From Cyanophora paradoxa CCMP329 (Eukaryota; Plantae; Glaucophyta), in contig QPMI01000062.1 of the NCBI GenBank assembly GCA_004431415.1, positions 372,001-436,000 on the forward strand: DNA of 64,000 bases, in the 5' to 3' direction. The translations under genes and the position numbers were made by a program. Below are positions 1-58,026 of the stretch, piece after piece; positions within the stretch are counted from its first letter, which is position 1, and each line of letters starts with the position of its first letter. Below the pieces are notes generated by a model. That model saw only the letters and a program-made list of their open reading frames with translations, did not search any database and was not told the origin of the DNA.

Positions 1-710
1 ACAGCCGCTGAGCTGCAGTGAGTGCCGCCGCGCGCGGCGGCCTCATCGGGGCGGCCTTCCAAGTTCAAACTCAGTGACTTGAAAGCCAATGTGCAAGTGA
101 TCATGATGATGATCATGATCACCTACCAGTACATCATGATCACGGAGTTAGTCTGCAGCCTGGCAGCTGGCGTGGCCTAAAGCTACTAGCTAGCCGCTGA
201 GCGCTATCGAGGCTATCGCTATCGATATATTTAGCTAACGAAGGCGCTACGTAATATACGACACTATGCACACTAAATAGCTGCCTATAGCTAGTCACGA
301 TAAACGACGTGACTGCTGAATAACTTAGAAATACGATGCCATGATGATCAGAACACTGAGCCATGCATACGCCAATGTGACATGTGTACACATGATGCAC
401 TAATCAGAACGTGGCCTAGATCAGGGGCAAAACGAAGAGAACAGATCAGCAAATTCAGAGGAGGGACATTAGCCACGCCGCTACTAGCCTAGTAGGCTAT
501 GGGGGACATTGATCATGACCAACGTTGGCGATGCGAGGCGAGCGGACTTCTGGTCCTAAAGCTTGGGATCTAAAGAAACGGGATCCTGATGATGGAAAAA
601 GAAACTCGAGATCAAAGTTCGTCACCGAAAACTGGACCGGAGGTTCGAATTCAGCGCTTTGATTCGGAAAGGGGCCGCAGCGGAAGATGGGTTGCGCTCG
701 AGAAATGCCG

Positions 711-3700
711 CTAAGGAGGCGGCTCGCGGTTGTACGGGGGTGCCGGGGACCCCGCCGCGGGCCCCGATCGCGACGTCGATGTCCTGGGAAGAGTGGCGGC
801 GCATCCGGAGGCGCCGGCGGCGCGAGGGAAGCGGCTCGAGGGGACTTCCTCCCGGGCCCAGGCGCCCTCCGGGGCGTGCCCGTGGGGGGCGGCGGGCCGG
901 GCTCCCGGCGCCGGCGCCGAGCTCGAGGGCGCGTGCGCTTGGCCATGCGAGCTCGAAGAGAAGGGCGGCAGGTGGAGCGCGCTCAGCTGCCACGCGTCAG
1001 CAGACGCCGGCGCCGCGCAAGGCGGGGGTACAGCGTGCGGGACGCACCGGGGGGTAGGGCAAGGCCCAGGCGCCAGGTGCGTCCGAGGCGGGCACGTGCG
1101 CGAAGATGTGGTAGGGGAACGGCAGAAGGGGCGCGGCGGGCAGGCCGGGGGCGGTCCGGAGGGGCGTCAGGGAGACGGGGTGCGCCCCGGGCCAGACGAT
1201 GCGGGGGTACTGGAGGGGCGGGGGCAGCCCCGGGAGGGCGAAGGCGGCGGGCTGGCGATTTGCGTGGGGCCCCGGCAGGCCGTGCGCCGCGGCCGGCTCG
1301 CGATCGCGCGGGGGCCCGGGCCCGGGACCGGGCGCCGGGCCCCTCTTCCGCCCCCGCTTCCGCTGCGCGGCCGCCGCCCCCGCCGGCTCGCCCGAGGCCG
1401 GCGCCCCGGGGCCGGCGGCTGGAGGCGCGCCGGCGGGGCAGCGGCCGCGGAGGGGCCGGGGCCATCGCCCGCCGAGGGGCCATCGCCCGCCGAGGGGCCA
1501 TCGGGGCGGCGCCACGGCTCCCCGTCGGCCCCGCCCTCCGCGCCCTCCCCGTCGCCCTCGGGCTCTCCGCCCGAGCCCTCGCCGGCCTCCGAGCCGCTCT
1601 CCCCCCCCTGCCCCGCCCCAGCGGCCCCCCGCCGGCTCCGCACGCTCCTCCCCCGCTTCTTGTTCGTGACTGCGCGCGCCGCCGCCCGGGGACGGGTCCC
1701 TTGGTCAGCGGAGGCCCCCGGGGCGAGGGCGAGGGCGAGCGGGGCGGGGGTGACGCTGCACGGACACTTGTGCCCCGGGTGCTGCGCTTCGAAGTCCTCC
1801 TTCATCGTCTCCGCCAGCGCCTTGAACCTGCCGCCCCGTGCCCCGCCGTGTCAGCCCCGGCCCCGCCCGGCGGCCTGCTGGCCGAAGATTTCTTTTGTTT
1901 CTTTTGGAGGGGCGGGGTGGCGGCGGCGGGAGGCCTAGAGTGCGAGGGCGAGGGGGGTGGGCGCGGCGGCACGCACTTGGCCCGCTCCCCGTCGGGAAGC
2001 TTCTTCCACTCCTGCCGGGGCGACCGCGCGCGCGCGCGCGTGTCTCAGCGCGCGCCCCTCCAATCCCCCAAAGAGAAATAAGGGATGAGGGAGGGAGGGA
2101 GGGGGGCGCTGCCGGCCGCGCTCCCGGCGCTCGAATCTCCATGGCCAGCCGGCGCACCTGGCCCAGCAGCCGCGAGATGTTCACGTTGGGCAAGTCCTGC
2201 CCCCGCACTCTTAGTCAGCCAGCCAGAATTCATCGCAAAACAACGGGCGAAGCTGACCGGGTTCTGGGCCGCCAGCTGTTTTCGATACTGCAGGAACCCG
2301 GTTAGCGGCCGAGAACTAGGCCTATAGCCAGGAGGGATCCAAGAAATAGACGGGAAAGCCGATATCGATGGAAGCCACAAGGGCGACAACGGGTGCAGAG
2401 GTAAATAGATGCATGTAGCGACAAGAACTGCGACGCTGCAGGCATATATCCGGCCAAGAAATAGGGGTAATCTAAGCTATAAAGATCGGATGTATAGAGA
2501 AAGAAATGACGAGAGGAAGGGCAACAACATATTATGCAGAGGTATACGTAGCTATAGGTAGGTGGATGGCGACGAATGAAATGGAAGGAGCCGGGAATGG
2601 GCGTTGGGGGCAACCCTATTTTCGGGTTCGTTTCTCGCGATCGCGAGTGCTATGTGCGCAAATGGGAGTGATGCGGTATCGGGAGTTAAGAGTCCTATGA
2701 GCGGGCTCGCGACTCGCTAGCTATAGGTGTTGCTTGGTGTCGGCCATGCCTTCTGGCGAACGCCTGTAGCTAGAACTAGAGCTAGAGGTACACGTAGTTG
2801 TACACGTAGAACTAACGCGCGAGAGAGGGTCCTTGTGTGGAGTGGAAACTTAGATCAGTCGACGCATAATTAGTTGATGTTCAGCTGCTATTGGATGCAC
2901 ATGTGTGAGGAGAAATTGAAGGGCGCACAACATTGCTGAAAAGCATCTGAGGCGCAGGAAGGAAGTAAGTTAGGGCGAATGAGCGCAGGGCTTGACGCGC
3001 TGCACGCACGAAAGCGTTACATCTGCCGAGAAGAGGTCAAGTGAGTCGGACGAGATCTGCAGTTGAGATGGAAGGCGGAAAGGGCGCGCACGGTCTGCGG
3101 AGGCGGCCGCGGGAGAGGCCGCCCACGACGCCGCTCCTGCCGGCGTACACGCGCAGGGTCTCCACCTTCAGTTCCGAGAGGGCCGCGGGGAGAGGCGGCG
3201 CCGCGCTCGGCGGCGGCGGCGGCGAGGCAGGCGGCGGCCACGCGGCCGTCACCCGCGGCGGGCTCCTCGTGATCGCCCGGGGCTCTCTGGCCGGCGCCCG
3301 TCCGCGATGGGCGGAGGCGGTGGATCGGGATGCGGGGACGGGGACGCGGGGGCGGCCTCCCGCCGGGCCTCCGCTTCCTCGAGCTCCACCGCCGCCTCGA
3401 GGCCGCTGGGCGCGGCCTCGCGGTCGGAGGTCGCCGCAGCGTCGGGCGCGTCGCCGGCCGTGCAGCCGCTGAGCACCGAGAGGGCGATGCTGGGGCGGGC
3501 GGGGCCGCAGCCTCCGCCTCCGGCGGCGGCCTCGCCGAGCTGCGTGCTGACCCGCGCGCTCGACGTCGAGCTGTGCGAGCCGCGCCGCGAGCCCTTCAGC
3601 AGCCGCTCCCGGTTGATGTGCGCCGCCAGCCGCGCCGCCGCCGCCTCCACCTCCCGCCCGTACGGGCCCTCCCCCGCCGCCGGCGCCTCTGCCCCGCCAG

Positions 3701-4212
3701 GCGCCGCCCGCGGGAGCCGGCCCACCTCGGTCTCGTGGGGCGAGCTGCCCCCGGACGCCCATACGGGCGGGGCCCGGGCGCGGGAGAGGCCGCAGGCTCT
3801 CGCCCGGGGGAGGCCGACGGGGCCCCCGAGGTTGGAGGCGGCGGCCCAGCTGCTGACGTTGCTGTAGAAGGAGGGGGCGCCCCACGCGCCGCCGGGCAGC
3901 TGCAGCTCCGGCCCCCGCGGCGCGCTGCCCGGGCCGCCGGAGACGGGCGCGCCCGGGTCGACGCCGCCCCAGAACTCCTCACCGAGCCCGAAGCCGGGCA
4001 GCGGGTGGGCGTACAGCGGGTGCGTCCCGTCGACGAGCTTCAGCCAGTCCTCATCGGTGAGCGCCGCCGTATCGGGAGGGGGCCCTCCAGCTCCGCCTAA
4101 CCGCCCCGCGTCGCGCGACGAACCCGATCCTGCCGCGCGTACGTCGGATTGTGCAGCGTAGCCGCGGGACGGACAAACGGCGAGATAAAGACCGCGTACC
4201 TCGTGCATCCAT
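711..4212 (-). CDS. Sequence-specific HMG-box transcription factor (SOX/TCF/MATA-like), multi-exon; 5' and 3' ends approximate
   Basis: Splicing GT-AG exons (..3092, 3022-3010, 2946-2929, 2287-2258, 2196-2158, 2011-1977, 1827-1766, 1669..) gives GRLRRPCNAFMLFSNVYRKQLAAQNPDLPNVNISRLLGQEWKKLPDGERAKFKALAETMKEDFEAQHPGHKFTNKKRGR, a complete HMG box with basic tail. The low-complexity flanks need frame corrections (about 3300 and 1400), so start and stop are tentative. Confidence 0.8.
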
Positions 4213-4931
4213 TGCTCGGAATCCCGGAAATCTACGACCATCCGACTAGGCGCATTGCGGCAAGCTCCACGTGCACTCCCGTACGCGCACGGCCAGCTGA
4301 GCAGCACATGTAACACATAACTCGAACGCTCGAGGTGCGAGAGGCTCGGATGCGGCGTCTCAAGCCTGGCAAGGCAGCATTCGCCGACTTCCGACCCGGC
4401 CGGCTTCTACTTAGCTTTCTCAAACTTCGGAATTCGAATGCTGTTGGAATTCGCCGTCGCGGCTCTCTACTACGACTCCGGCCTAGGCTAGGCAAGGCGA
4501 AATGCGCAGGCGCTCGTGCGTGGGCGCCGTGGGGCAGCCGCTCGCTGCTGGCGCGGTATATGCATGCAAATTTCAATTTGCGCGTGTACCCCCCCGCGAG
4601 CTGCAAGCTGAACAGGACTCGCGTTCGGAAGAAGCAACGAAGTCCGCGATCGCGATCGCGCGAGCGGACGGCGGACGCGCAACTTCAGCAGCGAAAAAAA
4701 GTTCAAAAAACGCACTTGAATAAGCGCCGTGAGGGCCCGTGACCTGTGTTCATGAATCCAGTCCATTGCAATTGTAGCTATAGAATCTTTGAAGTCCTAT
4801 TTGCCGAGGATATCGCGATCGATTGTGCAGACGATGGCGCCGGCGCGGCGCCGGCGGCCCGGCGCGCGCCGGGCGCGGAATCGCCGCGGATCGGATATCG
4901 ATCGATCGATATCGCGCAGCGACGCGCATGC

Positions 4932-5441
4932 CAGTGATGTTAACCTTACCAGTAATATTCTGTAATATACATTATAATAATGCATTATAATAATATTATT
5001 GTAATAGTGCCACTTTCCGGGGTTACCGGTAAGGTGTATTACAGGTTGGAAAGACCCCCTTAGTTCACGAGCAGCAGCGCTCTGCGACGTACCTACACGT
5101 CATTTAACAACATATAAGCTATATTTGACAGGTCTGATGACCAGGAAGCTCTTTAACAGCCCCGTTCGACCTTGCTTGATGGGGTACCCCTGTTGCTTGC
5201 CTCAAAAGGCCTCTTGAACCATGTTAGCAATAAGCTTAAAGTCACATCTTGCATGTTTCACGTGATAAGAGAGTGTTTCGGACAGATTAGCATCAAGAAT
5301 AAGCAGCGCAGGGCTGCGGGAATGGGGTTTCTATGAGGTATTACAGGTAATATAGTATAATATTAGTAAGGTTTATTATAATACCATTAAACATTACCGG
5401 TAATAGTGCATTTTTGGGATTAATTAGTAATAACATCACTG
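4932..5441. mobile_element. Non-autonomous hAT-superfamily MITE (510 bp)
   Basis: 11-bp TIRs CAGTGATGTTA (4932-4942) and TAACATCACTG (5431-5441). Identical 8-bp flanks GCGCATGC (4924-4931 and 5442-5449) match the hAT-length TSD. AT-rich body with subterminal TTACCGGTAA, GTAATA and TATTAC motifs; no transposase ORF. Confidence 0.9.
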
Positions 5442-5865
5442 GCGCATGCGCACAGTAACGCGGCGCACTGCGGCCCATGGCCAGTCTGCGGCGCATGCGC
5501 AGTGCGCACATGCTTGGGTAAAAAGTTGGGTTTCGGCCCCCCAACTTTCGGGCCAACTTTCGCAGTCTTTCGGCCACAATTGTAATTTGTAAGGCCCACA
5601 ACTTCAATTTCATTCAAGATTCGGGAGCTTTCGGTGCAAGCTGCTAGCTACTGTAGTAGCTTTCAAGTTTAGCCTTCAGCCGCGTAGTAGCATAGTATGG
5701 CGGGCCTACTAGCGGCTAGGGCCCAGGGGGACCGATCTTCCACGTGCACTGTACATGTGAAGCTGCAGGCTGCAGCTGGCTACGTTACGTCGACGTCCGT
5801 CATCGCCGATCGCGATGATCGATCCGTGCATCGCGCGCCATGTCCATGTCTTACGACTCGGCGAA

Positions 5866-41225: not shown

Positions 41226-42968
41226 ATGGTGCAGCAAGCATTTTCAGCGTGTGCTGCCGTGCTTGTGAGGGCGCCGTTCGTCCCAGCTGCTAGCACTCTG
41301 CAGCTGCGTCACAGGAGATCGCCACCTAAGCTCGGCACAGGGGCGCGCGCCGGTCAGCGAGCGCATCCGAAATGCTTTGCAACCGCACGTACGCGCGCTT
41401 TCTTCGTAAGCGGCCGCCCTTCTATGTCGGAGGGTCAGGACTCCGGCCGCGGCCAGCTTCAGCTTGAAGTTCCGGGCCAGCGGGAGATGTCCCTGCCAAG
41501 AAACCATGTGCATGTTTTTGTCGAGATGGAGAGCTTGGCGGGGCACGGGGGAGGAGGCGTCGGAGGAAGAGGCAGGAAGACGCGTACGGCGCTCGGCGGC
41601 GAAGACGGCTACTCGGACGAAGAGTTCGCCAATGAGAGGGACATGCAGGCATTTGAGAAGGCGCCGCTCGTCCAGAGCCAGGTCGCTGCCCTCTCCATGC
41701 CCAGCGCGGTTGAAGGTGTGTCGTAATTTTCACCTTGGTGCTTTCGTCTTCTCATCTCACTGCATTCCATTGCGAATTCGAATACAGTCTATCACGGACT
41801 CCTTTCAAGCTACCCGCTCGAGACAAGAGCGATAACAGCTGCTGTGCGCCTCGGATCCGCCCACTTCCTTGTTTCAAGTTTCTGAACCCCGTGCAGCTTT
41901 TTGGGGGCCTTGCCGATATTTTGAGCCAGATCGGAAGTGCCTGCTTGAGGAGAAAATCGCTGGTGCTGAAGTATGGCAGAGTGCTCAGACTGGCCGCGTG
42001 CTGTTTTTTCTTGAATGGCGTCGTGCGCATTCTCAAACGTCGATCGTGCTCTTAGCATTTAATCGCTACTGCTGACGCGTACTGGTGGCCGTGCTGATAC
42101 AGTGCAATCACATGTGGTGAAAAGCTTTTGGTTCTCACCTGTCCCTTCCCAGCTCATCTCTAAGGTTTTTCTTTATTCGCAGGTACAGCTACTTGGATGG
42201 GAGTATTCCTGGGAACGGTGTTCCTGATGTGCTGAAAAAGGTGTGACTGCCTTTCGCTCATGACATTCGCGGATAGACTGCGCTGACTGATGCCTGGTAG
42301 GTCGCACTGGATGAATTCGTGTACAGGTTCCTTTCCCGCCCCCATGCCCGGTCCTGAAAACTGAGTCGACCTCGGGTCGCAGCCTTTATTCGGACTCTGC
42401 TTTTTTCGTCGTGATAGGCACGCTTTTTTTGTAAATGATAAAGCACTTCAAAGCGCCAGCTAACCACGCTATCAGGAATGCTAGAGCAACGCAGTTGGGA
42501 GCACACAATTCGGGTGAGCCCCTCCAGCCTGTGCATGCACTTGGAACTGGCTGTTCATTCTGAGTTGTTGTGCAGCGGTTACAACAGGAGTTCATCCCTA
42601 CGTATCTCGCCGACCTTAGCATCTGGGTGCTTTAGTCATTATTTTCATGCCATGATGCTGTTGATTACGATTACGATTACGGAATTCGCACCGTGTGCAG
42701 CCTGCTGCGCAAATCATCAACTTCCGGTGGATTATCCATGCTTGAGCTTGATCAAAGATATTGTATTCTGATGATGATTCTTATGCAGATTTGTTCCGGC
42801 CCTGTATCGCGTGTTTTATATGAATGTGGTGTCCTTGATGTGGACGTGCTACCTGGCAGGTGTGTGGGGTTTTGTGTCAGCTGAATCGACGCGAGTCTTG
42901 ATGTTTTATGTTGATCAGGGCAAGCACAAAAGGAGGTCCAGCCACGCAGAATCAAGGTCAAGGACTGA
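41226..42968 (+). CDS. Mpv17/PMP22 family membrane protein with N-terminal organellar extension (about 10 exons)
   Basis: YHGLLSSYPLETRAITAA/LFGGLADILSQ..NGV/CNHMW/YSYLDGSIPG..VLKK/VALDEFVY..IW/PAAQIINFR/FVPALYRVFYMNVVSLMWTCYL matches the Mpv17 signature (WP..Q.INF..VP...RV). Confidence 0.88.
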
Positions 42969-43077
42969 AGCCTCCAGCAGCTGAGTTCCTTGGTCAGATG
43001 TACAGCCATCATTGCAGTCCGACGGTCGGATGCATGCAACTTTTTCAAAGAATCTATTTCAGGTAGAGCTATCTATT

Positions 43078-44456
43078 GGGGAAGGGAAAATCACTTCCCC
43101 TGTCCCTCTCCTTAGGGCCCAACCCTACCCCAAATCCTGTTTCCCCGACCTCCTCAAAACCCGGGCCGCGCGGTATATCCTGAAAGCACATCCCAAGGGG
43201 ACCCCGAAACCATGTCGCCCGGTCCCGTCCGACCAAAGGGTGATCCAGGAACGGGCACCAACTCCCGGGACAAAAACGGGTCCAGCGACGCATAGGGAGC
43301 AGATATACGAGCCAAACCAGTTCGAGGTCGTTGCACGCATCATGAACAACATTCCGTACAGCGGGAGCAAGGCCGGATGCGAGCGCGGTTGCGTGGGAGG
43401 ACGCCGCGCGCCCTAGCCAATCACATTGGAGAGTCAGTTAACTTACCCTGAGGAAAGTCTTTTCGCGGACCCCCCCGGCCGCTTTCTCCCTCCCGCTACA
43501 CCGCCCTGGCCAGCGCTTTCTCCTAAGCTTCCCGACAGCCCGGCCGGCCGCGGCGCTCTCTGTCACGCGCGCCTCTCGCGCGCGCGGCAGTCTGCTGTAG
43601 CTAGCCGCGCCATGAACGCCACAGCCGCTCCAACCGCACGCACCCCGGTCGCAAGCCGGCCACAAGCCGGTCGCACTAGCTTGCGCCTTGGGGTCGCATC
43701 AGGTTTGCCCGCGGCGCGCCAGCTGCGCAGGAGCCCGAGGCCATGTCCGCGCCGCGCAATGCCCCGGGCCCGCGCGCGGCCGCGCGCCGGGCGCCCGGCC
43801 GGCGCGGCAGTACGAGCTCGCGCGCGCGCGACGGCCGCGGGGCAATTGCAAGCGCATGCGCAGGTTGCGAACGTCTAGATCTGGCCATGGCCAGCAGCGC
43901 GCCTCGAGCTCCGATCCGATCGATCCGATATCGATCATGCGCACTCGCAACACACGCACATGCCTACCTTCATGCACGGTGCGCTCGCAGCTACGCAGCG
44001 CCCCTTGGTACCAGTCTTTGCCCGCTCAGTTGCATTATCTCGCCCTAGGCCCTCCGGTCCATTCGGCGTGTCCCGCAATCGCGCGCGTGACGTCGACGGC
44101 CTCGCGCGCGCGCGTGACGGGGCATGCGCAAGCGCAGGAGCAGACATGTACATCCACAAGGTTTGCGAGCCATCCCCGGCCCACTGCGCCGCGTCCAACC
44201 TCTTCTAGCCTCCTCTTTCGAATTTTATATTTAGCCTCGAAAACAGCTCGCCTGCAGCTGGCGCCGGCCTGGCGTCGGATGGCCGCGGCCACCGCCTTCA
44301 AGGCTTCTAGATCTGGACCGGAGCCTCGGAGCGCTAGCTCTGCTTTTCTTCCATTTGAATGGACGCAGCGGTCCTTCAAGTTTGCTCCTTTTCCTGCTCT
44401 CTAGATCTCCGGATTCAAGCCATCGCCCCAAATTCGCGAGTGACTTTCCCTTCCCC
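43078..44456. mobile_element. Possible degenerate TIR element or paired transposon ends
   Basis: 18-bp inverted repeat with 1 mismatch: GGGGAAGGGAAAATCACT (43078-43095) and AGTGACTTTCCCTTCCCC (44439-44456). No TSD or transposase seen. Confidence 0.4.
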
Positions 44457-45794
44457 GGACCCCGCAGTGGCGTGCACGAGCACGACCCCTTCCGAGCGCG
44501 CGCCGCAGCGGGCCCTTTATATATATGTATCTATGTTCGTCGTCTTTAATTTTTCAGAGATGTGTAGACTTCCGAAGTTCTTCCTCGTGATTCCCGATAC
44601 CGTGATTCCCGATACCGTGACTTGTATCCTCGTTGTGTACTACGAGTGGGTACGCCCACCGTAGATCTTAAAAAAAAATGTAGACTTCTTTTCAAATCTG
44701 AGTCTAGTTCATTGGACACACATCGCAACTTGGCAACACTGCCGCGTCTGATTGACTTGTCATTGAACACAATCTCTTATACGGCATTTGCATGTGCAGC
44801 CGTATGACTTCTTTGAACAAATTTGCAAATACTATGATACATATGCCCAAGCCCGGCAGGGCGGGAGAATATAGCCCAGCGATTGGGCGGGAGAAGACAA
44901 AGCCCGAGGAGCCCAGCCAGCGTAGCCGAGGACGCGCTAGTCGGAGGATAGAGCAGCTCAGAGAACCTCAGGGAAGCACGGACACATGTGCAGGGGAGGT
45001 CGCCCGGGGGCACGAGCTCGCCAAGCTCGCCCTGCCGTGCGATCCGGTCCCGCATCTCATCCACCTGCGGGCCGCCCCGCCCGGTCAGCTGCAGAAGCGG
45101 AGGCCGAGGGGCGGAGGGGCGGAGGTAAGGTCGAAGCGGCGCTTAGACGAACATACGGCCCGCGCGTGCCTATCCATCAGTCCCGCAACCCTAGGGACGC
45201 GACTTTTTGCATGCGGCTATGGTGTCGTCAAAGTAGGCGATGGCACCACGCCGCGCGTTCTCTGATCCCTCTGCGAAGTGAATCGCCCCGGCCGGTCAGG
45301 CCAGCGCTAGTTCCAGGCCAGGTCGCGCTCGCAGCTCCAGGACTCCAGCTCCAGAGCTTCATTGAGGTAGATGTGACGATCTGGGCGTGCTTAAGCAGCT
45401 CGAGCGCGGGGGCCGCTGAACGCGGCGGCGCTGCATCAACGCGCTGAAGACCCCTCCGCGTCCTTGGAGCAGTAATAGTACGTCGATCACAAAGCTTGGC
45501 GCCGTAGCCGATGCGGGCGCCTGCAGCTCGTTTCCGATCGCAACCGGCCGGTCCTGAGCGCTCAGGGGGCGCTTTTCAAGAGGCTGTTGCTCGCACCGGC
45601 ACGCTGTTGAAGCTTAAGCCGCAGTTCAAGCCGCTCTTTTCAAGCGGCTGTTCAGCCGCTGTTGGTGGACCGGGGTAGAGCTCACTTCCTGCGTGAGTCT
45701 CCAGCCAAGCCCTCCTTTTCCCATAGCCTTTAACCTGGTGCGTAGGCGTTGTATGTTCTCTCACGCTCGCATCGAACACCTTCCGCAGTGCAAA

Positions 45795-46313
45795 ATGCTC
45801 TCTGGAGCACGGCGCAGCATTGCGCAGATCTGCAGGAATTTCGTGCGAGGCGCGCTGTGCGCTTCCCATTCCTCTACCTGGCTCATTATACAAGCAGGCG
45901 TGAGCTCGTCAACGGGGGGCGCAGCGAATGGCGGCTCCGACTCTTCCGTATCCAAGAGCGCCCTCAGCTTCGTGGATCCTAAATTCGTCGGCTCTCTGGT
46001 TCTTCTTTGGCTCGGTGCCGTGGGTGACCGGCTCTTCTTGGCGCGTGGGCTTCTGGATACGAAGCGCGACAAGGAAGTCGAGAACATCGCGGAGTCCCTG
46101 AAGGATCTGGACGCAAAGCGCGGCAAGGACGTCGAGAGCATCACGGGGTCCATGAAAGAGCTCGGCTTTGCGATCAATAAGCAGTCGGAGCGCATCGACC
46201 GCATCTTCGAGCTGCTCCTGCGCGGCGGCGGCGGCGGCGGTGGCGGCGGCGATGGCGATGGCGGCGGCGTCGGCGGACCATCTCGCAAGGACAGCGGCGG
46301 CGGCCGGACCTAA
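45795..46313 (+). CDS. Small protein: mitochondrial-like presequence, one TM, internal 18-aa duplicated coiled coil, Gly-rich tail
   Basis: MLSGARRSIAQICRNFVRG..; FVGSLVLLWLGAVG; LDTKRDKEVENIAESLKD / LDAKRGKDVESITGSMKE; RIDRIFELLL. Confidence 0.55.
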   Translation: MLSGARRSIAQICRNFVRGALCASHSSTWLIIQAGVSSSTGGAANGGSDSSVSKSALSFVDPKFVGSLVLLWLGAVGDRLFLARGLLDTKRDKEVENIAESLKDLDAKRGKDVESITGSMKELGFAINKQSERIDRIFELLLRGGGGGGGGGDGDGGGVGGPSRKDSGGGRT

Positions 46314-49469: not shown

Positions 49470-51040
49470 ATGGCGGCGGCAGCGTACGTGGTGCCGGTGT
49501 GCCCACGTCCTCTCAGCTGCTCGTCTCTGCTCGCCCGGGACGCAGCGCCCGCCGCGCGGCTTTGCCTGAACGCGCCGGAGTCACGCCGGGCGCATGCGGA
49601 CCTGCAGGAGCACATCCGTGCGGCCAGGACCGTCTTTCTGAATGGAGGCAGCAGCTTTGGGGAGGCACCTAGTTGGGCGGTTGCCGAGACGCGGCCATAC
49701 CGGCCAGTGGCGACCCAGGCGGCCAGCCGGCAGGCGGGCGCCAGCACAATGGAGAGAACACGGCCAAGCCGCTCCTCGCCGGATCTCAGCAGCGGCTCCG
49801 CGCGAATCCTCCCGACCTCGCCCGTGCGAGAGGCTCCCGTTCTCCTCACGGCCCAGGAGCTTCAGGCCGCTCTGGACGAGGCGGCGGCTCGGTTGTTGAA
49901 CATGCCAACAGAAACACCTGCAGAGCGCGCGCCTGAGTCGCCGCCCAGGCAGCGGCCAATCATGCCCAGTCAGCCGCCCGGCCAGGCCAAGCCGCGATTC
50001 TACTGGAGCAATTTCGAAAATCTCCGGCGCGAGATCGTCACCTTTATGAGTACACACAGCTTGGAGGCCGTGCCGACTCAAGTTCAGGTATGGGGCACTT
50101 CAGGTTGTCGCCGATCAATTGGTTCTGATGCTCGCTGCGCCCACAGCTGATGCGGCACGGGCGAGGAGATATTTACTACGCAATCAGGAAGCATGGAGGG
50201 TTCAGTTCCGTCGCGCGCCGCCTGGGACTCCCGACTAGCGTGTCTGAGTACTGGTCCGACTTCGAGAACGTGGAGAAGGAGCTCCGGATCTTCATGGCCC
50301 AGCAATCTCTCAAAAAGCTCCCCACCAAGCCGCAGGTTGGCACCTCGTCTGCCTTTTTATCTTCTTCTGTTCTCATTTCAACGGACCCCACAGTTGCTCG
50401 AGGCCGGTCGGAAGGATCTGGTGCTTGCCATCCAGAAACACGGTGGCACTATGGAAGTCTCGAAGCGGATGGGTTTCACATCGGAAGTGCGGGAGAGGGG
50501 GTGCGTGGCTACTGCATCGCTCTCGCTCCCTTGAAATGTCTGACCCCCCACTCCGCAGTTACTGGAAGAAGATGGTGCACGTGGCCGAGGAAGTGAAGAA
50601 ATTCGTCCAGGAGCACCAGCTTCCCCACATGCCCCACAAGCACGAGCTGGAGGCGGCGGGGCGCCATGACCTTGTTGGCGCCATCCTTCGGCAGGGGGTG
50701 CGTTGGCTACTTTCTTGCAGGAATTTTCGCCCCATGCTCATAGTGCTCGCAGGGCCTTGCTGCCGTCGCCGAAGCGGCGCAGCTCGAAGTGAAAAAGGCA
50801 GCTTTGCGGAGGCCCCCAAGCTACTGGGACGATATCTCGAACCTAGAGCGGGAGCTTCTGCAGTTTATCGAGGAGCACGGGACGCCTGGAAGGATGCCAA
50901 CATCCGATGAGCTTAAGCGAAACGGGGCATCGCATCTGCGATATGCCATCGTGCGCCATGGTGGTGCCAAGACCGTTGCACGGATGTTGCACCTCCGAAG
51001 AGCCCATGCTCGGCAAGATGACAGCGAGGACATTGAGTGA
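49470..51040 (+). CDS. Probably plastid-targeted protein with four ~60-aa helical repeats (YW..N...E..F....PT..L...GR.DL..AI.KHGG...VA..L)
   Basis: Repeats: FYWSNFENLRRE..PTQVQ/LMRHGRGDIYYAIRKHGGFSSVARRLGL; EYWSDFENVEKE..PTKPQ/LLEAGRKDLVLAIQKHGG; YWKKMVHVAEE..MPHKHELEAAGRHDLVGAILRQG; SYWDDISNLERE..MPTSDELKRNGASHLRYAIVRHGG. Confidence 0.85.
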
Positions 51041-51726
51041 TCGTTTTCGGAGCAGCTATCATTTACATTTTTGACGTGACAGACACGGCTGCTGGCTTGC
51101 AGTACATCTGTAGAGGACTGTCATTGTAGAGGAAGCTGATGGGATTCACTGGGGAATCGTGAGTGCTTGATGTTTTTGTAGCTGCAGCTTTCGCTTTCCG
51201 CTCGTATATTCTCTTCTAATTATCTTTTCCTGCTCTCTTCTGGTATTGCTCTTCTCTTCTGTTATTCATGTGATTATGGACAGTCTTGGGTGCTTTTACG
51301 AAGATAGAACAAGTAAATAATGCAAAGGATTGTATGATATCAAGTCTGCGGCAGAGTCAGGGCACAGCAGTGAAGGAAGCTCGTGTGATGGTCTGAAAGC
51401 GCAGCTTCAAAAAGGCTTGCGCAGCAAACTTTGAAATTAAATGCTTGCAATTGTCTCTCTCAAGAGTCTACCCCACATAAGCATGTGCGTTTGGGCATCA
51501 TGGCATGTCTTTGTGATCATGACTCAAGATTCAACTTGGCAATGATTACCGTAGTACGAGGCACAATCATTGAATTGTAACCGCCGCAGTGCAAGCTTCC
51601 GAAGTTCCGAAGTTCCAACCGTTGAACTGTACGGTACACGTTGAACTTCCGAAGTTCGGAACTTGCAAGATGCTTGCACACTGCGGTGGCACCATGGCCA
51701 CGGTGCAGCAATTGGAAGTGTGCAAA

Positions 51727-53185
51727 GGCGGGGCGCGCACAGAACGGAGGCCTTGACCTTCTCCGGCGCGGCGTAGCTCACGGCGCAGGTGATGAGGCCC
51801 CCGACTGCCGCGGCGCGCGGCGTCAGAGGCGGGGCGCGAGGGCGCGCGCTTCCCCGCCCCCCGGGGCGAGCGCACTGGAGTTGCCGGCAACGACGCAGGG
51901 CTCGTGGACAAACTCGTCGATGAAGTCCAGCGTCATCTCCTGCGCCCCGCCCGCTTGAGGCGCCGCCCTCGGGAGGGAGGGAGGGCGCGAAGAGGCGGGG
52001 GAGGCGTGCGCCCGCCTTCCAGAGGTCGATAGAGTACTCGACGTCGGCTTTGTCGCTGTCCCCGAAGCCCAGCAGATCCAGCGCGTACACCTTGTACCCG
52101 TGCTCCGCCAGCACCTGCGCGGGCGCGCGCCCGCCCGTCAGCCACGCCGCCCTTCGGGCCGCGCTGGCTCTCGGAATCGGGCGGTGCGCACCGGGATGTT
52201 CTTCTTCCAGTGGGCGACGGAGGCCCCGAAGCCGTGGATCAGCACGATCGGCTTGCCGCAGCCCTGCTGGGGGAGGCACGCCGCGGCCCTCGGCTCGCGC
52301 GGAGGGCGGAGGAGGGTCGAGTCGGTTCTCGCACCGCGGTCGCATAGTTCACGGTGTGCCCCCGCCACTTCCACTTGTGCGTCATGAAGGGGAGCGCCTG
52401 CGGGGGCGCCCGCGTGAGGGGCGCGGGGGGGCGCCGGGCCGAGCCCCCAGGATGCGGCGGACCTTGAACTTATCGGAGGCAGTCCGCACGGCCGCCGTCA
52501 ACTCCTCGGGCCTCGTGACTGCCGGGTCGTACTGCACCAGAGCGATGTGGGGCAGCGAGACCTGTTGACAGACCTGTGCGGTCAGCCGAAGGACTAAGGC
52601 GCTTCTGCTATCAGAGGCGCCAAAGAGAGCTTTCGGCCTTCACCTCGGCGCGCTTGACCCCAGGAAGGCTCCGGAGGGCCTCGAACACGCTCTGCGGCAG
52701 TGCTCACTCATCGAGCGCGGGCACGCGCGGCCGAGCGGGCGCTTCTGACCTTCTCGCACTCTTCGCATTCCATACCCTCGACGCGCATCGATAACTCTGC
52801 GCGGGAGCACTGTATTAGCTGAGCCCGGCGTCGACAAGCGCTCGCCGCGCTTGCCGCGCCAGGAACGGCGCGGGGCGTGCGTATTGTCTAATATGCGAAG
52901 ATAGAAAACGTGCGCACCTACTTCAGCCAGCGGCGTTGGCATCGCCGCCGCCGACGCCACGGCCGGCCAGCAGGTCGGCGCCCGTCGGCTAGGCGGCGCG
53001 GTTGAAGAAGGAGCAAAGGAGGTAATGGCACGGCCCAAGAAGGAGCGCCGCTGGCGCACGATAGCCGCTCCGCCGCCTGAGCTCGCCGACTGAGCTCTCG
53101 CTGCGGTGGAGCAGTGGCAGGCGCCGGCTCCAGTGGGCGCTCTCCGTAGCACCGGAACAAAAGGGGCTGTCGTGAAGGCTTCCAT
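51727..53185 (-). pseudogene. 3'-truncated duplicate of the HMA-hydrolase gene
   Basis: Identical to 47876-49334. It stops inside the intron after KASVL, so it lacks the exons for the catalytic Asp and His. Confidence 0.8.
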
Positions 53186-53320
53186 GTTGCTGCGCTCTTC
53201 CGCTGCTGCCGCGCTCTTCCGCTGCTGCCGCGCTCTTCCGCTGCTGCCAGGCAGATGCCTGCGTCGAGGGGTACAGTCGGGAAGGTTGAGTGATTCGGCA
53301 CGCGTCCAACCACGTGAGGC

Positions 53321-54888
53321 ATGGCGGCGGCAGCGTACGTGGTGCCGGTGTGCCCACGTCCTCTCAGCTGCTCGTCTCTGCTCGCCCGGGACGCAGCGCC
53401 CGCCGCGCGGCTTTGCCTGAACGCGCCGGAGTCACGCCGGGCGCATGCGGACCTGCAGGAGCACATCCGTGCGGCCAGGACCGTCTTTCTGAATGGAGGC
53501 AGCAGCTTTGGGGAGGCACCTAGTTGGGCGGTTGCCGAGACGCGGCCATACCGGCCAGTGGCGACCCAGGCGGCCAGCCGGCAGGCGGGCGCCAGCACAA
53601 TGGAGAGAACACGGCCAAGCCGCTCCTCGCCGGATCTCAGCAGCGGCTCCGCGCGAATCCTCCCGACCTCGCCCGTGCGAGAGGCTCCCGTTCTCCTCAC
53701 GGCCCAGGAGCTTCAGGCCGCTCTGGACGAGGCGGCGGCTCGGTTGTTGAACATGCCAACAGAAACACCTGCAGAGCGCGCGCCTGAGTCGCCGCCCAGG
53801 CAGCGGCCAATCATGCCAGTCAGCCGCCCGGCCAGGCCAAGCCGCGATTCTACTGGAGCAATTTCGAAAATCTCCGGCGCGAGATCGTCACCTTTATGAG
53901 TACACACAGCTTGGAGGCCGTGCCGACTCAAGTTCAGGTATGGGGCACTTCAGGTTGTCGCCGATCAATTGGTTCTGATGCTCGCTGCGCCCACAGCTGA
54001 TGCGGCACGGGCGAGGAGATATTTACTACGCAATCAGGAAGCATGGAGGGTTCAGTTCCGTCGCGCGCCGCCTGGGACTCCCGACTAGCGTGTCTGAGTA
54101 CTGGTCCGACTTCGAGAACGTGGAGAAGGAGCTCCGGATCTTCATGGCCCAGCAATCTCTCAAAAAGCTCCCCACCAAGCCGCAGGTTGGCACCTCGTCT
54201 GCCTTTTTATCTTCTTCTGTTCTCATTTCAACGGACCCCACAGTTGCTCGAGGCCGGTCGGAAGGATCTGGTGCTTGCCATCCAGAAACACGGTGGCACT
54301 ATGGAAGTCTCGAAGCGGATGGGTTTCACATCGGAAGTGCGGGAGAGGGGTGCGTGGCTACTGCATCGCTCTCGCTCCCTTGAAATGTCTGACCCCCCAC
54401 TCCGCAGTTACTGGAAGAAGATGGTGCACGTGGCCGAGGAAGTGAAGAAATTCGTCCAGGAGCACCAGCTTCCCCACATGCCCCACAAGCACGAGCTGGA
54501 GGCGGCGGGGCGCCATGACCTTGTTGGCGCCATCCTTCGGCAGGGGTGCGTTGGCTACTTTCTTGCAGGAATTTTCGCCCCATGCTCATAGTGCTCGCAG
54601 GGCCTTGCTGCCGTCGCCGAAGCGGCGCAGCTCGAAGTGAAAAAGGCAGCTTTGCGGAGGCCCCCAAGCTACTGGGACGATATCTCGAACCTAGAGCGGG
54701 AGCTTCTGCAGTTTATCGAGGAGCACGGGACGCCTGGAAGGATGCCAACATCCGATGAGCTTAAGCGAAACGGGGCATCGCATCTGCGATATGCCATCGT
54801 GCGCCATGGTGGTGCCAAGACCGTTGCACGGATGTTGCACCTCCGAAGAGCCCATGCTCGGCAAGATGACAGCGAGGACATTGAGTGA
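53321..54888 (+). pseudogene. Second copy of the four-repeat gene, with three 1-nt exonic deletions (pseudogene or sequencing errors)
   Basis: atgcccagt becomes atgccagt (about 53816); gagagggggt becomes gagaggggt (about 54350); cagggggt becomes caggggt (about 54546). Each shifts the frame relative to copy 1. Confidence 0.65.
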
Positions 54889-55428
54889 TCGTTTTCGGAG
54901 CAGCTATCATTTACATTTTTGACGTGACAGACACGGCTGCTGGCTTGCAGTACATCTGTAGAGGACTGTCATTGTAGAGGAAGCTGATGGGATTCACTGG
55001 GGAATCGTGAGTGCTTGATGTTTTTGTAGCTGCAGCTTTCGCTTTCCGCTCGTATATTCTCTTCTAATTATCTTTTCCTGCTCTCTTCTGGTATTGCTCT
55101 TCTCTTCTGTTATTCATGTGATTATGGACAGTCTTGGGTGCTTTTACGAAGATAGAACAAGTAAATAATGCAAAGGATTGTATGATATCAAGTCTGCGGC
55201 AGAGTCAGGGCACAGCAGTGAAGGAAGCTCGTGTGATGGTCTGAAAGCGCAGCTTCAAAAAGGCTTGCGCAGCAAACTTTGAAATTAAATGCTTGCAATT
55301 GTCTCTCTCAAGAGTCTACCCCACATAAGCATGTGCGTTTGGGCATCATGGCATGTCTTTGTGATCATGACTCAAGATTCAACTTGGCAATGATTACCGT
55401 AGTACGAGGCACAATCATTGAATTGTAA

Positions 55429-55537
55429 CCGCCGCAGTGCAAGCTTCCGAAGTTCCGAAGTTCCAACCGTTGAACTGTACGGTACACGTTGAACTTCCGA
55501 AGTTCGGAACTTGCAAGATGCTTGCACACTGCGGTGG
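55429..55537. repeat. Small imperfect fold-back (MITE-like remnant); duplicated at 51581-51689
   Basis: Arms CCGCCGCAGTGCAAGC and GCTTGCACACTGCGGTGG, with internal TTCCGAAG repeats and GAACTTCCGAAGTTC hairpin. No TSD. Confidence 0.5.
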
Positions 55538-55839
55538 CACCATGGCCACGGTGCAGCAATTGGAAGTGTACGATTATAATAAACTTGAAATTATAATAAC
55601 GACTCCACATGGGGCTCCGAGGCTCAGCGGCTTGGGCTGCATACTATGACTCAGTGATATATATACGATCACGATTACGACTCAAGCTGCTGGAAACAGC
55701 AGCACATCATGGCATAAGGATCCGGAGGGGCCGGGCGTGCCACCGCTCAGTGACTGTCACACATGTACACTGTGACAGTGACCATATGCATCAGCTGAGA
55801 TTTCACTCTTGATCAAAGCAGCCTAACTATTTTACTGCG

Positions 55840-57915
55840 CTACAGGTTCTTTTTTCGCTTCTGACTGCTCAACCAGTCACTTTCCCAGATGAAAGTGCTG
55901 CAACGCCCCTCGGGAGGGTGTCCCTGGGGTCGTGGGCAAATGAAGAATTTGCGACCTGACTGACGTTGGCAAGGAGCAGCACAGAATAAAGACAGACGAG
56001 CGTACCCATATTTGTACCTTTTTTATTAGTCTTTAGCAATAAGCAAGGCTCGTTGTGGCCCTTGCAGCTGGGGACTGGTGGGGATCCCGACAGAAGACCT
56101 TTCCAACTTGCTGCTGCTGCTGCCTGCTTGCTGGGCGACTGAAGTTCTGAAGGCTGCTGATTAATCTCAACAGCAAGCTCATCAGCAATGCCTGTCTCCA
56201 ATGAGCTCTCTACTCTGGCTCGCTTGCTCAATGGTTCACTGCTTTTCAGCTGCAGCTGTGATCTGGAGGTGTCTGCTGTAGGCTGCCCGAAGAATTTCAG
56301 TAATGTTGGCTGCGCATGCGCATCTGCTGCCTTTCTTGATCTTCTTGGATGCCCGGCGGACTCTAAAGCTTTGTTCACGCTGCTGCTGCTGCAGGTTTGA
56401 ACAGGCTGCTTAGCAGTGCTGCCTTCATCGTCGTCGATTACAACCACTTCAGGGGCGGATGCATGCTGCTGCACTGGCAGGTGCACAGACTCTTCGACGA
56501 AATCCAGACTGGAGTCTTCTTTCTGAGAATCAGGGCTTGCCGATGGTTGGGATTTAGCAGGCTGAAAGAAGGTTGCAAGGGTTCGCTGCTCGCAGCTTTT
56601 GAAGCACAGCGAAGGAGGCTCTTGGGGCTCTGCTGAACCAGGTAACTTGGAAAGATCGAGATCAGCAAAGACAGGTGCATGGTCGCTCCCCTGGAAAGAG
56701 TCAGAAAAGCACTTCAGGTGTCATGTGAGCGAATGCATACCATCACACTGGCAGCAATGTCGCAATTGAGGAAGACACCAGTGTTCACAAGCCCCGAATC
56801 GGCAAGAATGTAGTCGATGCGTGTACCTGGACAGACATCAGATATGGGATGAGTAGCAGAAAATGTCCTACCGTAGTTGGCCTCGCGGGCACGAGTCACG
56901 GTTGACCAGCATGTAAATGCATCACATCGGTCAGGCCAAAACTCTCGAAAAACATCAACCAAGGGCCCCCCACTATCTCTGAGCAAACTTCTCAGCCAAG
57001 CGTTTGCAGGATGACTGTAGCGCGACTCAGAAATTGCAGAGCGATTAGCACAGAAAAAATGCACTCTGTCCAGCTTGAGAGCCCGTGGTCACTCTTCCAT
57101 GTTGCGGCTTCTGCGTGGTCCTTTTCATCTCTCATGGCATTAAAGTCCCTGCTCATGATCAGCTCGATCAATGCTGGTGCCAAGCAAAGAGTAGTGCACA
57201 CACACCCAACAACAATTACATGCCGCCCTGAATCAAGGAGGGCCTTGACACGCAGTTGAACAACAGTCTGAAAGCGCAGCTTAAACGCTTGTCTCTCCCC
57301 ACCATGTGCGTTTGGGAAATAACAGTTGAGCAGGACAAAAGCTCCATGATCTGTGACGACAACTCTTCCCTCGCAGTCAAGGGTGCGCAGTTCGCTGGCC
57401 GAGAATGAAAGGTGAAGGTCGCCATAAGTTCCAACAGCGTCCCGTCTAGATTACGATTACGATTACGATTAGAGAGTTTCGATTACGAGCAACCATTTAC
57501 CGAGTTTCGTATACGCCCGTGGCGCCCTCTTCGGCCTTCGTGGGTATTGCAAAGGGCTTGGCAGAACGGGTGTAGGTTGCTGTTCCCGAATAGCTGCAAG
57601 ATGTTGAGCATGCCCGGCGTTCTGCTTGGACGCTGGGCAAGTAGCTCACGGGCGTCGGGCTCGATCAGATGAGAAGAAGCCGTGATAGCCATCAACAAGG
57701 CCAACGTCAACGTCCACCTTGGTCAGCTTGGTCTCCTGAAGGCAAACGATATCGCTGCGCGTGCGATCGGCTGGGTTTGAGTTCTGGCATGGGAACGGCA
57801 GGCACCCGAGGCCATCCAGAAGCTGTCGCAGGCTCTCGCGCTGCCGGTTCAGTCCGTTCACGTTCCACGTCACGATGCGCAGTCGTTCAGGCGCCTGCGG
57901 ATCTCCCGCTGCCAT
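55840..57915 (-). CDS. APEX2: AP endonuclease 2 (ExoIII family) with PIP box and C-terminal GRF zinc finger
   Basis: LRIVTWNVNGL, DIVCLQETKL, YSGTATY, DVFREFWPDRCDAFTCW..ANYG/TRIDYIL, PIP box QPTLLKFF, Zf-GRF CKGHNEPC..TNKKGTNM/GRKFFICPRP..RCSTFIW. Confidence 0.95.
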
Positions 57916-58026
57916 GCAGGAGCGCCAGCGCCGGCGCCGCCGCCCTCGCAGCGCGGCGCCGCGTACGCGCCTCCCGCCAGGTTATTGCAACGCGTGCCGA
58001 TAGAGCGTGAAGCGCAGCGCTGGGCA

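Follow-up and report, generated by a model that had tools for sequence, protein, structure and literature searches.

We analysed a 64,000-nucleotide (nt) stretch of the Cyanophora paradoxa CCMP329 genome (positions 372,001 to 436,000 of contig QPMI01000062.1 in assembly GCA_004431415.1), referred to here in its entirety as the window, and describe a gene on its minus strand whose product contains an HMG box. All positions are those of the window, and all exons and introns of the gene are on the minus strand. The coding span of the box (1647-3099) is interrupted by seven introns and is distributed over six micro-exons, of 13, 18, 30, 39, 35 and 62 nt, and two flanking exons. The upstream flanking exon, with its 3' end at 3092, ends with the first residues of the box (RRP). 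The 13-nt exon (3010-3022), bordered by AG and GT, completes the proline codon and encodes CNAF, and the 18-nt exon (2929-2946) encodes MLFSNV. Then follow, beyond a long third intron (2288-2928), the 30-nt exon (2258-2287), encoding YRKQLAAQNP, the 39-nt exon (2158-2196), encoding DLPNVNISRLLGQ, the 35-nt exon (1977-2011), encoding EWKKLPDGERA plus two bases that begin a lysine codon, and the 62-nt exon (1766-1827), encoding helix 3 from FKALAET to HPGHK.

All seven introns of the box are bordered by GT..AG in the minus-strand reading of 1500-3300, the donor being GTGCG in five of them; from 5' to 3' their sizes are 69, 63, 641, 61, 146, 149 and 96 nt. When the exons were joined in silico, the resulting frame held, without a mismatch, the 79-residue peptide that an earlier note, made from the DNA sequence alone, had assembled from the same micro-exons and flanks. 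Within the box, the reading frame contains no stop and no frameshift. Each of three diagnostic motifs is cut by an intron (RPCNAF/M, ISRLLGQ/EW and HPGHK/F, where the slash marks the cut) and, because all three are split, a scan of all six frames across the entire 64-kb window found no HMG motif in contiguous frames. The same note had called the box hidden, and in this sense it is. Intron 2 (2947-3009, 63 nt) has no in-frame stop, and its retention would add 21 residues in helix 1 with the frame kept.

To obtain transcript evidence, contigs of four of the ten public runs, all from one organism, that contain this DNA were compared with positions 300-5200 of the window. Three runs (X1, X3 and X7) were classed as RNA-type by guess, and the fourth (X8) is a DNA run from 2012. 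Joint coordinates are those after cut shifts, and joints that read CT..AC on the plus strand are GT..AG for a gene on the minus strand. The joints 1669/1766, 1827/1977, 2011/2158 and 2196/2258 were carried by RNA-type contigs of X1, X3 and X7, and between 2946 and 3092 contigs of the same three runs had the 13 letters of the smallest micro-exon and nothing else. The DNA run gave one unspliced contig across 1626-3130. Because spliced joints occur in X1, X3 and X7, and a single unspliced contig in X8, we conclude that the former contain complementary DNA. Six of the seven junctions of the box, including those on both sides of the 13-nt exon, are confirmed by these contigs. The seventh, between the 18- and 30-nt exons, we infer by other means, as set out below, so that the junctions proposed in the earlier note hold directly for all but this one.

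The same contigs define the rest of the gene. Exon 1 (4199-4565) comprises the 5' untranslated region and a start codon at 4210-4212; 13 codons upstream of it lies an in-frame stop, and RNA-type contigs reach 4565. It is separated by a 70-nt GT..AG intron (4129-4198; joint 4128/4199 in X1, X3 and X7) from exon 2 (3092-4128), which encodes an N-terminal low-complexity region rich in alanine, glycine, proline and serine and which ends with the RRP of the box. Downstream of the micro-exons, exon 9 (1048-1669) encodes a basic tail (TNKKRGR) and then a C-terminal low-complexity region; a 61-nt GT..AG intron (987-1047; joint 986/1048 in X1, X3 and X7) precedes the last exon (300-986), which contains a TAG stop at 711-713 and the 3' untranslated region, the contig continuing for about 200 nt below position 300. 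The last two exons are likely to be continuous with the box, no single listed contig tying 1576-1637 to the remainder.

Compared with Illumina-type contigs, the window is one base short after 3275, 3747, 3764 and 3805, and an extra G after 1434 is seen in RNA-type contigs only. Two of the missing-base sites, 3275 and 1434, were inspected, and each is in a homopolymer run; the missing bases have the appearance of frame-breaking errors of long-read assembly. With the contig-supported bases restored, the ten exons form one open reading frame (ORF) of 716 codons, which opens with the ATG at 4212 and closes with the TAG at 711-713. If the base after 3275 is left out, the frame is broken ahead of the box; if that after 1434 is left out, the protein would have 584 residues, with the box unchanged. 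The box is single and occupies residues 350-425 (76 amino acids). Alanine, glycine, proline and serine together make up 57% of the 349 residues before it and 65% of the 291 residues after it.

These features account for the form in which the gene appears in public databases. When words of the N-terminal ORF were searched for, one protein was found, EukProt EP00741_Cyanophora_paradoxa_P021754, a product of 298 residues without a Pfam domain, derived from gene tig00000241_g20997.t1 and covering the N-terminal region encoded in exon 2. Its frame is correct across 3747-3805, but the assembly on which it is based has the base loss at 3275 in common with the window, and because of the false stop that this creates the model ends before the HMG box. 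Word searches for a protein bearing the box gave no match with the C-terminal ORF (in the range 117-371 amino acids) or with the read-through of the 62-nt exon. A full HMMER search with the EukProt protein against 1.84 billion representatives returned only itself, and the N-terminal region therefore has no detectable relatives. Pfam recognized no family in either flanking exon. The flanks of the box are lineage-specific.

Between the EukProt protein and the window a few residues differ; two of these differences, close to the N-terminus of the protein, correspond to single-nucleotide polymorphisms (SNPs) at 4111 (T>C) and 4115 (G>A). Both are also present in the DNA run X8, and the RNA-type runs agree with the window. 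Since X8 and EukProt share these SNPs against the window, at least two genotypes, whether strains or haplotypes, are represented in the public data. Over the box region (1626-3130), the window and X8, which are the two sources compared, do not differ.

To which class the box belongs was addressed by counting words in the cores of about 40 residues given by Martin et al. 2010 (PMC2999568) for the sets MATA_HMG, SOX_HMG (including TCF and HBP1, and here called SOX-TCF) and HMGB_HMG. NAF was found at least 982 times in SOX-TCF and 111 times in MATA_HMG, and NAFM at least 779 and 12 times; NAFMLF occurred at least 28 times in SOX-TCF (in TCF and HBP1) and 0 times in MATA_HMG. None of the three was present among the HMGB sequences listed. 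The corresponding words of the HMGB set were SAF (at least 145) and SAY (at least 242), both with a count of 0 among the SOX-TCF sequences listed; in MATA_HMG, SAF was absent and SAY occurred 13 times. NAY was counted at least once in SOX-TCF, 44 times in MATA_HMG and at least 32 times in HMGB. The words EIS (at least 510, 100 and at least 24, in the same order) and ISK (at least 589, 64 and at least 29) were found in all three sets.

By reading, a 39-residue core of the Cyanophora box aligns without gaps with printed SOX, SRY, HBP1, MAT1-2-1 and HMGB cores. In hand counts on selected printed cores, identity was 19/39 with rabbit SRY, 17/39 with both Talaromyces MAT1-2-1 and Xenopus HBP1, and 16/39 with Drosophila Sox102F, compared with 13/39 for a Monosiga HMGB-type box and 11/39 for both a sea-urchin HMGB-type box and human TFAM box A. 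According to PMC2691818, a single box is typical of sequence-specific HMG proteins, and an intercalating residue in helix 1 is common to all of them. The Cyanophora protein has the asparagine of RP.NAF at the start of helix 1, in the form RPCNAFM, where HMGB boxes have serine; it has a non-polar residue, methionine, in the intercalating position after NAF; and there is one box in the 716-residue frame, with no second motif in any frame of the window. At the level of motifs, these findings support assigning the box, in its N-terminal half, to the SOX/TCF/MATA family, leaving the subfamily aside, and to that extent the class proposed in the earlier note stands.

The resemblance to the animal SOX-TCF group (SRY, SOX, TCF/LEF, HBP1 and CIC) comprises the RP.NAFM start, the N..IS..LG..W motif, the single box, the basic tail past helix 3 and the gap-free core identity of 16-19/39 (Sox102F, HBP1 and rabbit SRY, by hand count); NAFMLF is found as an exact word in Hydractinia TCF and HBP1. 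However, the Cyanophora box has cysteine after RP, where SOX-TCF boxes have methionine or leucine, and phenylalanine after NAFML, where they have tryptophan or tyrosine. It also has HPGHKF instead of P.YKY, SOX group domains are absent, and the flanks are without relatives. With fungal MATA_HMG proteins (MAT1-2-1, Ste11 and Rox1) it has in common RP.NAF, QNPD, N..IS and G..W, as well as ISR with Ste11 and the 17 core identities with Talaromyces MAT1-2-1, although NAFM is a minority form in that subfamily (12 of 111 NAF). MATA_HMG has been described as occurring in fungi exclusively, and SOX-TCF as apparently confined to animals, whereas HMGB-UBF boxes are found in plants, fungi and animals (PMC3730723; the same is stated in PMC2999568). 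Because these two papers limit the former subfamilies to animals and fungi, a SOX/TCF/MATA-type box in a glaucophyte is phylogenetically unexpected; the earlier note had regarded the class as untypical of land plants, in agreement with both. Our literature searches, in which subscription papers were outside the scope, found no account of boxes of this type in glaucophytes.

The HMG proteins usually reported from Archaeplastida are of the HMGB type (HMGB, SSRP1, 3xHMG and ARID-HMG), which the Cyanophora box resembles in superfamily and overall length. The protein might accordingly be an architectural, HMGB-like chromatin protein that binds DNA without sequence specificity, its likeness to SOX and MATA boxes being due to convergence or to ancestral residues that were kept. 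Consistent with this, the consensus sequences of the HMG classes are 35-40% identical to each other (PMC2999568), an asparagine is found at the same position in some HMGB boxes (NAY, at least 32), and low-complexity flanks are a feature of many chromatin proteins. We nevertheless consider it unlikely. The cores of HMGB proteins have SAF or SAY, while NAF, NAFM and NAFMLF were all absent among those listed, and, in our hand counts, the HMGB examples shared fewer core residues with the Cyanophora box than did SOX, SRY and MAT1-2-1. Acidic tails or multiple boxes are also frequent in HMGB-type proteins, whereas the Cyanophora protein has one box and not two, and no acidic tail, aspartate and glutamate making up just 7% of the C-terminal region.

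Our favoured interpretation, to which we assign a probability of about 0.7, is that the ten exons make up a nuclear, transcribed gene of Cyanophora paradoxa whose 716-residue frame encodes a gene-specific transcription regulator with a single SOX/TCF/MATA-class HMG box. As the N-terminal signature of that class, the box shows RP.NAFM and N.NIS..LG..W, joined by a basic tail. DNA binding, sequence specificity and a nuclear role are predictions from the sequence. By analogy with the class, the L-shaped, three-helix box would bind in the minor groove of DNA, where the asparagine of NAFM would contact bases and the Phe-Met pair of helix 1 would wedge between base pairs, causing the DNA to bend. 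The basic tail (KKRGR) that follows helix 3 would steady the bend, and is probably a nuclear signal as well, while the long low-complexity flanks may recruit partners. A product with these properties would act as a gene-specific transcription regulator. Finally, splicing versus retention of the 641-nt intron 3 may gate its output, since the form in which the intron is retained stops ahead of the completion of helix 1.

Several observations weigh against this interpretation. An asparagine at the key position is, as already mentioned, shared with some HMGB boxes (the NAY count of at least 32). A C-terminal P.YK[YF] followed by a basic tail may be a trait of the SOX/TCF/MATA class, and the Cyanophora box, with the C-terminal motif HPGHKF and then KKRGR, differs from P.YKY. 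Pfam searches with the 62-nt exon and with both flanking exons gave no match, nor did searches of the PDB with the 62-nt exon and with the read-through from the 13-nt exon via intron 2 to the 18-nt exon. The C-terminal 130 or so residues hinge on the base after 1434, seen in RNA-type contigs only. In addition, a direct join of the 18- to the 30-nt exon was not seen among the contigs listed for X1, X3 and X7. The contig that retains the intron between them has a depth similar to that of the spliced contig downstream and, because it is the only listed contig over intron 3, much of the RNA may be unproductive.

Intron 3 (641 nt, 51% GC, where GC is guanine plus cytosine) has no further copy in the window and no credible match in Rfam. 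It is retained in a 701-nt contig of X1 and X3 that consists of 12 nt of the 13-nt exon, the 18-nt exon, the full intron and the 30-nt exon, and it is covered in part by contigs of X7. Translation through the intron would stop 15 codons past MLFSNV. Its retention represents a substantial form of the RNA, beyond a trace. The contig upstream of the intron stops right after the 18-nt exon, and the spliced contig downstream begins at the first base of the 30-nt exon; the retained-intron contig begins one word past the end of the upstream contig, and stops at the last base of the 30-nt exon. This layout is a two-path bubble between the two exons, as expected if spliced and retained forms coexist. 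The spliced path of the bubble would be a contig of 60 nt, hard to place on the genome. Moreover, the direct join of the two exons yields the spacing from NAF to NP that all of the printed SOX and MATA cores have without variation. Given the contig ends, which fall exactly on the borders of both exons, and this standard NAF-NP spacing, the junction is likely to be real.

The same data bear on the suggestion that the gene is decaying or non-productive, i.e., that the frameshifts are real, intron 3 is kept and no HMG protein is made. In its favour, the ORF in the window breaks at 3275, where the EukProt model stops as well, and contigs retaining intron 3, in part in the case of X7, were found in all three RNA-type runs. 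However, the Illumina-type contigs mend the frame at the break points to give one ORF of 716 codons, six short introns are precisely removed, the box itself is free of stops and frameshifts, and each border of intron 3 coincides exactly with a contig break, as it should for a bubble of spliced and retained forms. We regard this reading as very unlikely.

The earlier note had also put the gene forward as a candidate regulator of mating type or sex. In fungi, mammals and brown algae, broadly similar HMG-box proteins do determine mating type or sex (PMC3730723, PMC11057875), and intron retention could serve as a conditional switch in a cryptic sexual cycle of glaucophytes. In Volvox, HMG1f is an HMG-box gene within the algal mating locus (PMC5882469). 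The brown-algal HMG-sex gene (MIN), according to a passage in PMC11057875 that cites Luthringer et al. 2024, encodes an HMG-domain transcription factor determining male sex. It parallels the Cyanophora gene, in a comparison made by description only, as an HMG-domain factor of a lineage that is photosynthetic and belongs to neither animals nor fungi. However, the brown-algal gene is in the V chromosome's sex-determining region, whereas no sex linkage is indicated for that of Cyanophora, and no mating-type locus context was seen. Among fungal MATA_HMG proteins, some, such as Rox1, are without a mating role (PMC3730723).

A mating locus would be expected to show presence/absence or strong divergence between mating types, strains or haplotypes; neither was found between the two sources compared. 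The box region is identical in X8, despite the SNPs at 4111 and 4115 upstream, and because of this identity the gene is not idiomorph-like between the window and X8. The gene was also present in RNA-type runs of two studies, and no repeat-rich or hemizygous context was seen around it, an ordinary transposon-like element upstream aside. To our knowledge, glaucophytes have no described sexual cycle. A role as a mating-type or sex-determining regulator is therefore unsupported by the present comparison, and we consider it very unlikely.

A broader proposal, which we offer only tentatively, is that the SOX/TCF/MATA class was no opisthokont invention, that glaucophytes carry a genuine family to which this gene belongs, and that its intron-3-spliced form is made only in certain conditions, for example in a stress programme or a cryptic sexual one. 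If a tree were to confirm the class, sequence-specific HMG factors would originate deeper in the history of eukaryotes, and the gene would offer a regulator candidate for a lineage about whose life cycle little is known. Domain-based censuses of transcription factors in Cyanophora paradoxa are likely to undercount such genes, because introns cut every diagnostic motif and homopolymer frameshifts interrupt the reading frame.

Two further features of the window may be recorded. An AT-rich element of about 514 nt (4930-5443), lying about 370 nt upstream of the 5' end of the transcript, has perfect 13-nt terminal inverted repeats (GCCAGTGATGTTA and TAACATCACTGGC) and imperfect sub-terminal inverted repeats, with GCGCATG at both flanks. 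Its depth in the DNA run X8 was about five times that of the gene, and the RNA-type runs contained almost none of it. It looks like a multi-copy transposon resembling miniature inverted-repeat transposable elements (MITE-like). In base composition, the window as a whole has a GC content of about 70%, with several stretches of 52-59% at 42000-46000 and 50000-58000, compared with 65-80% in the remainder.

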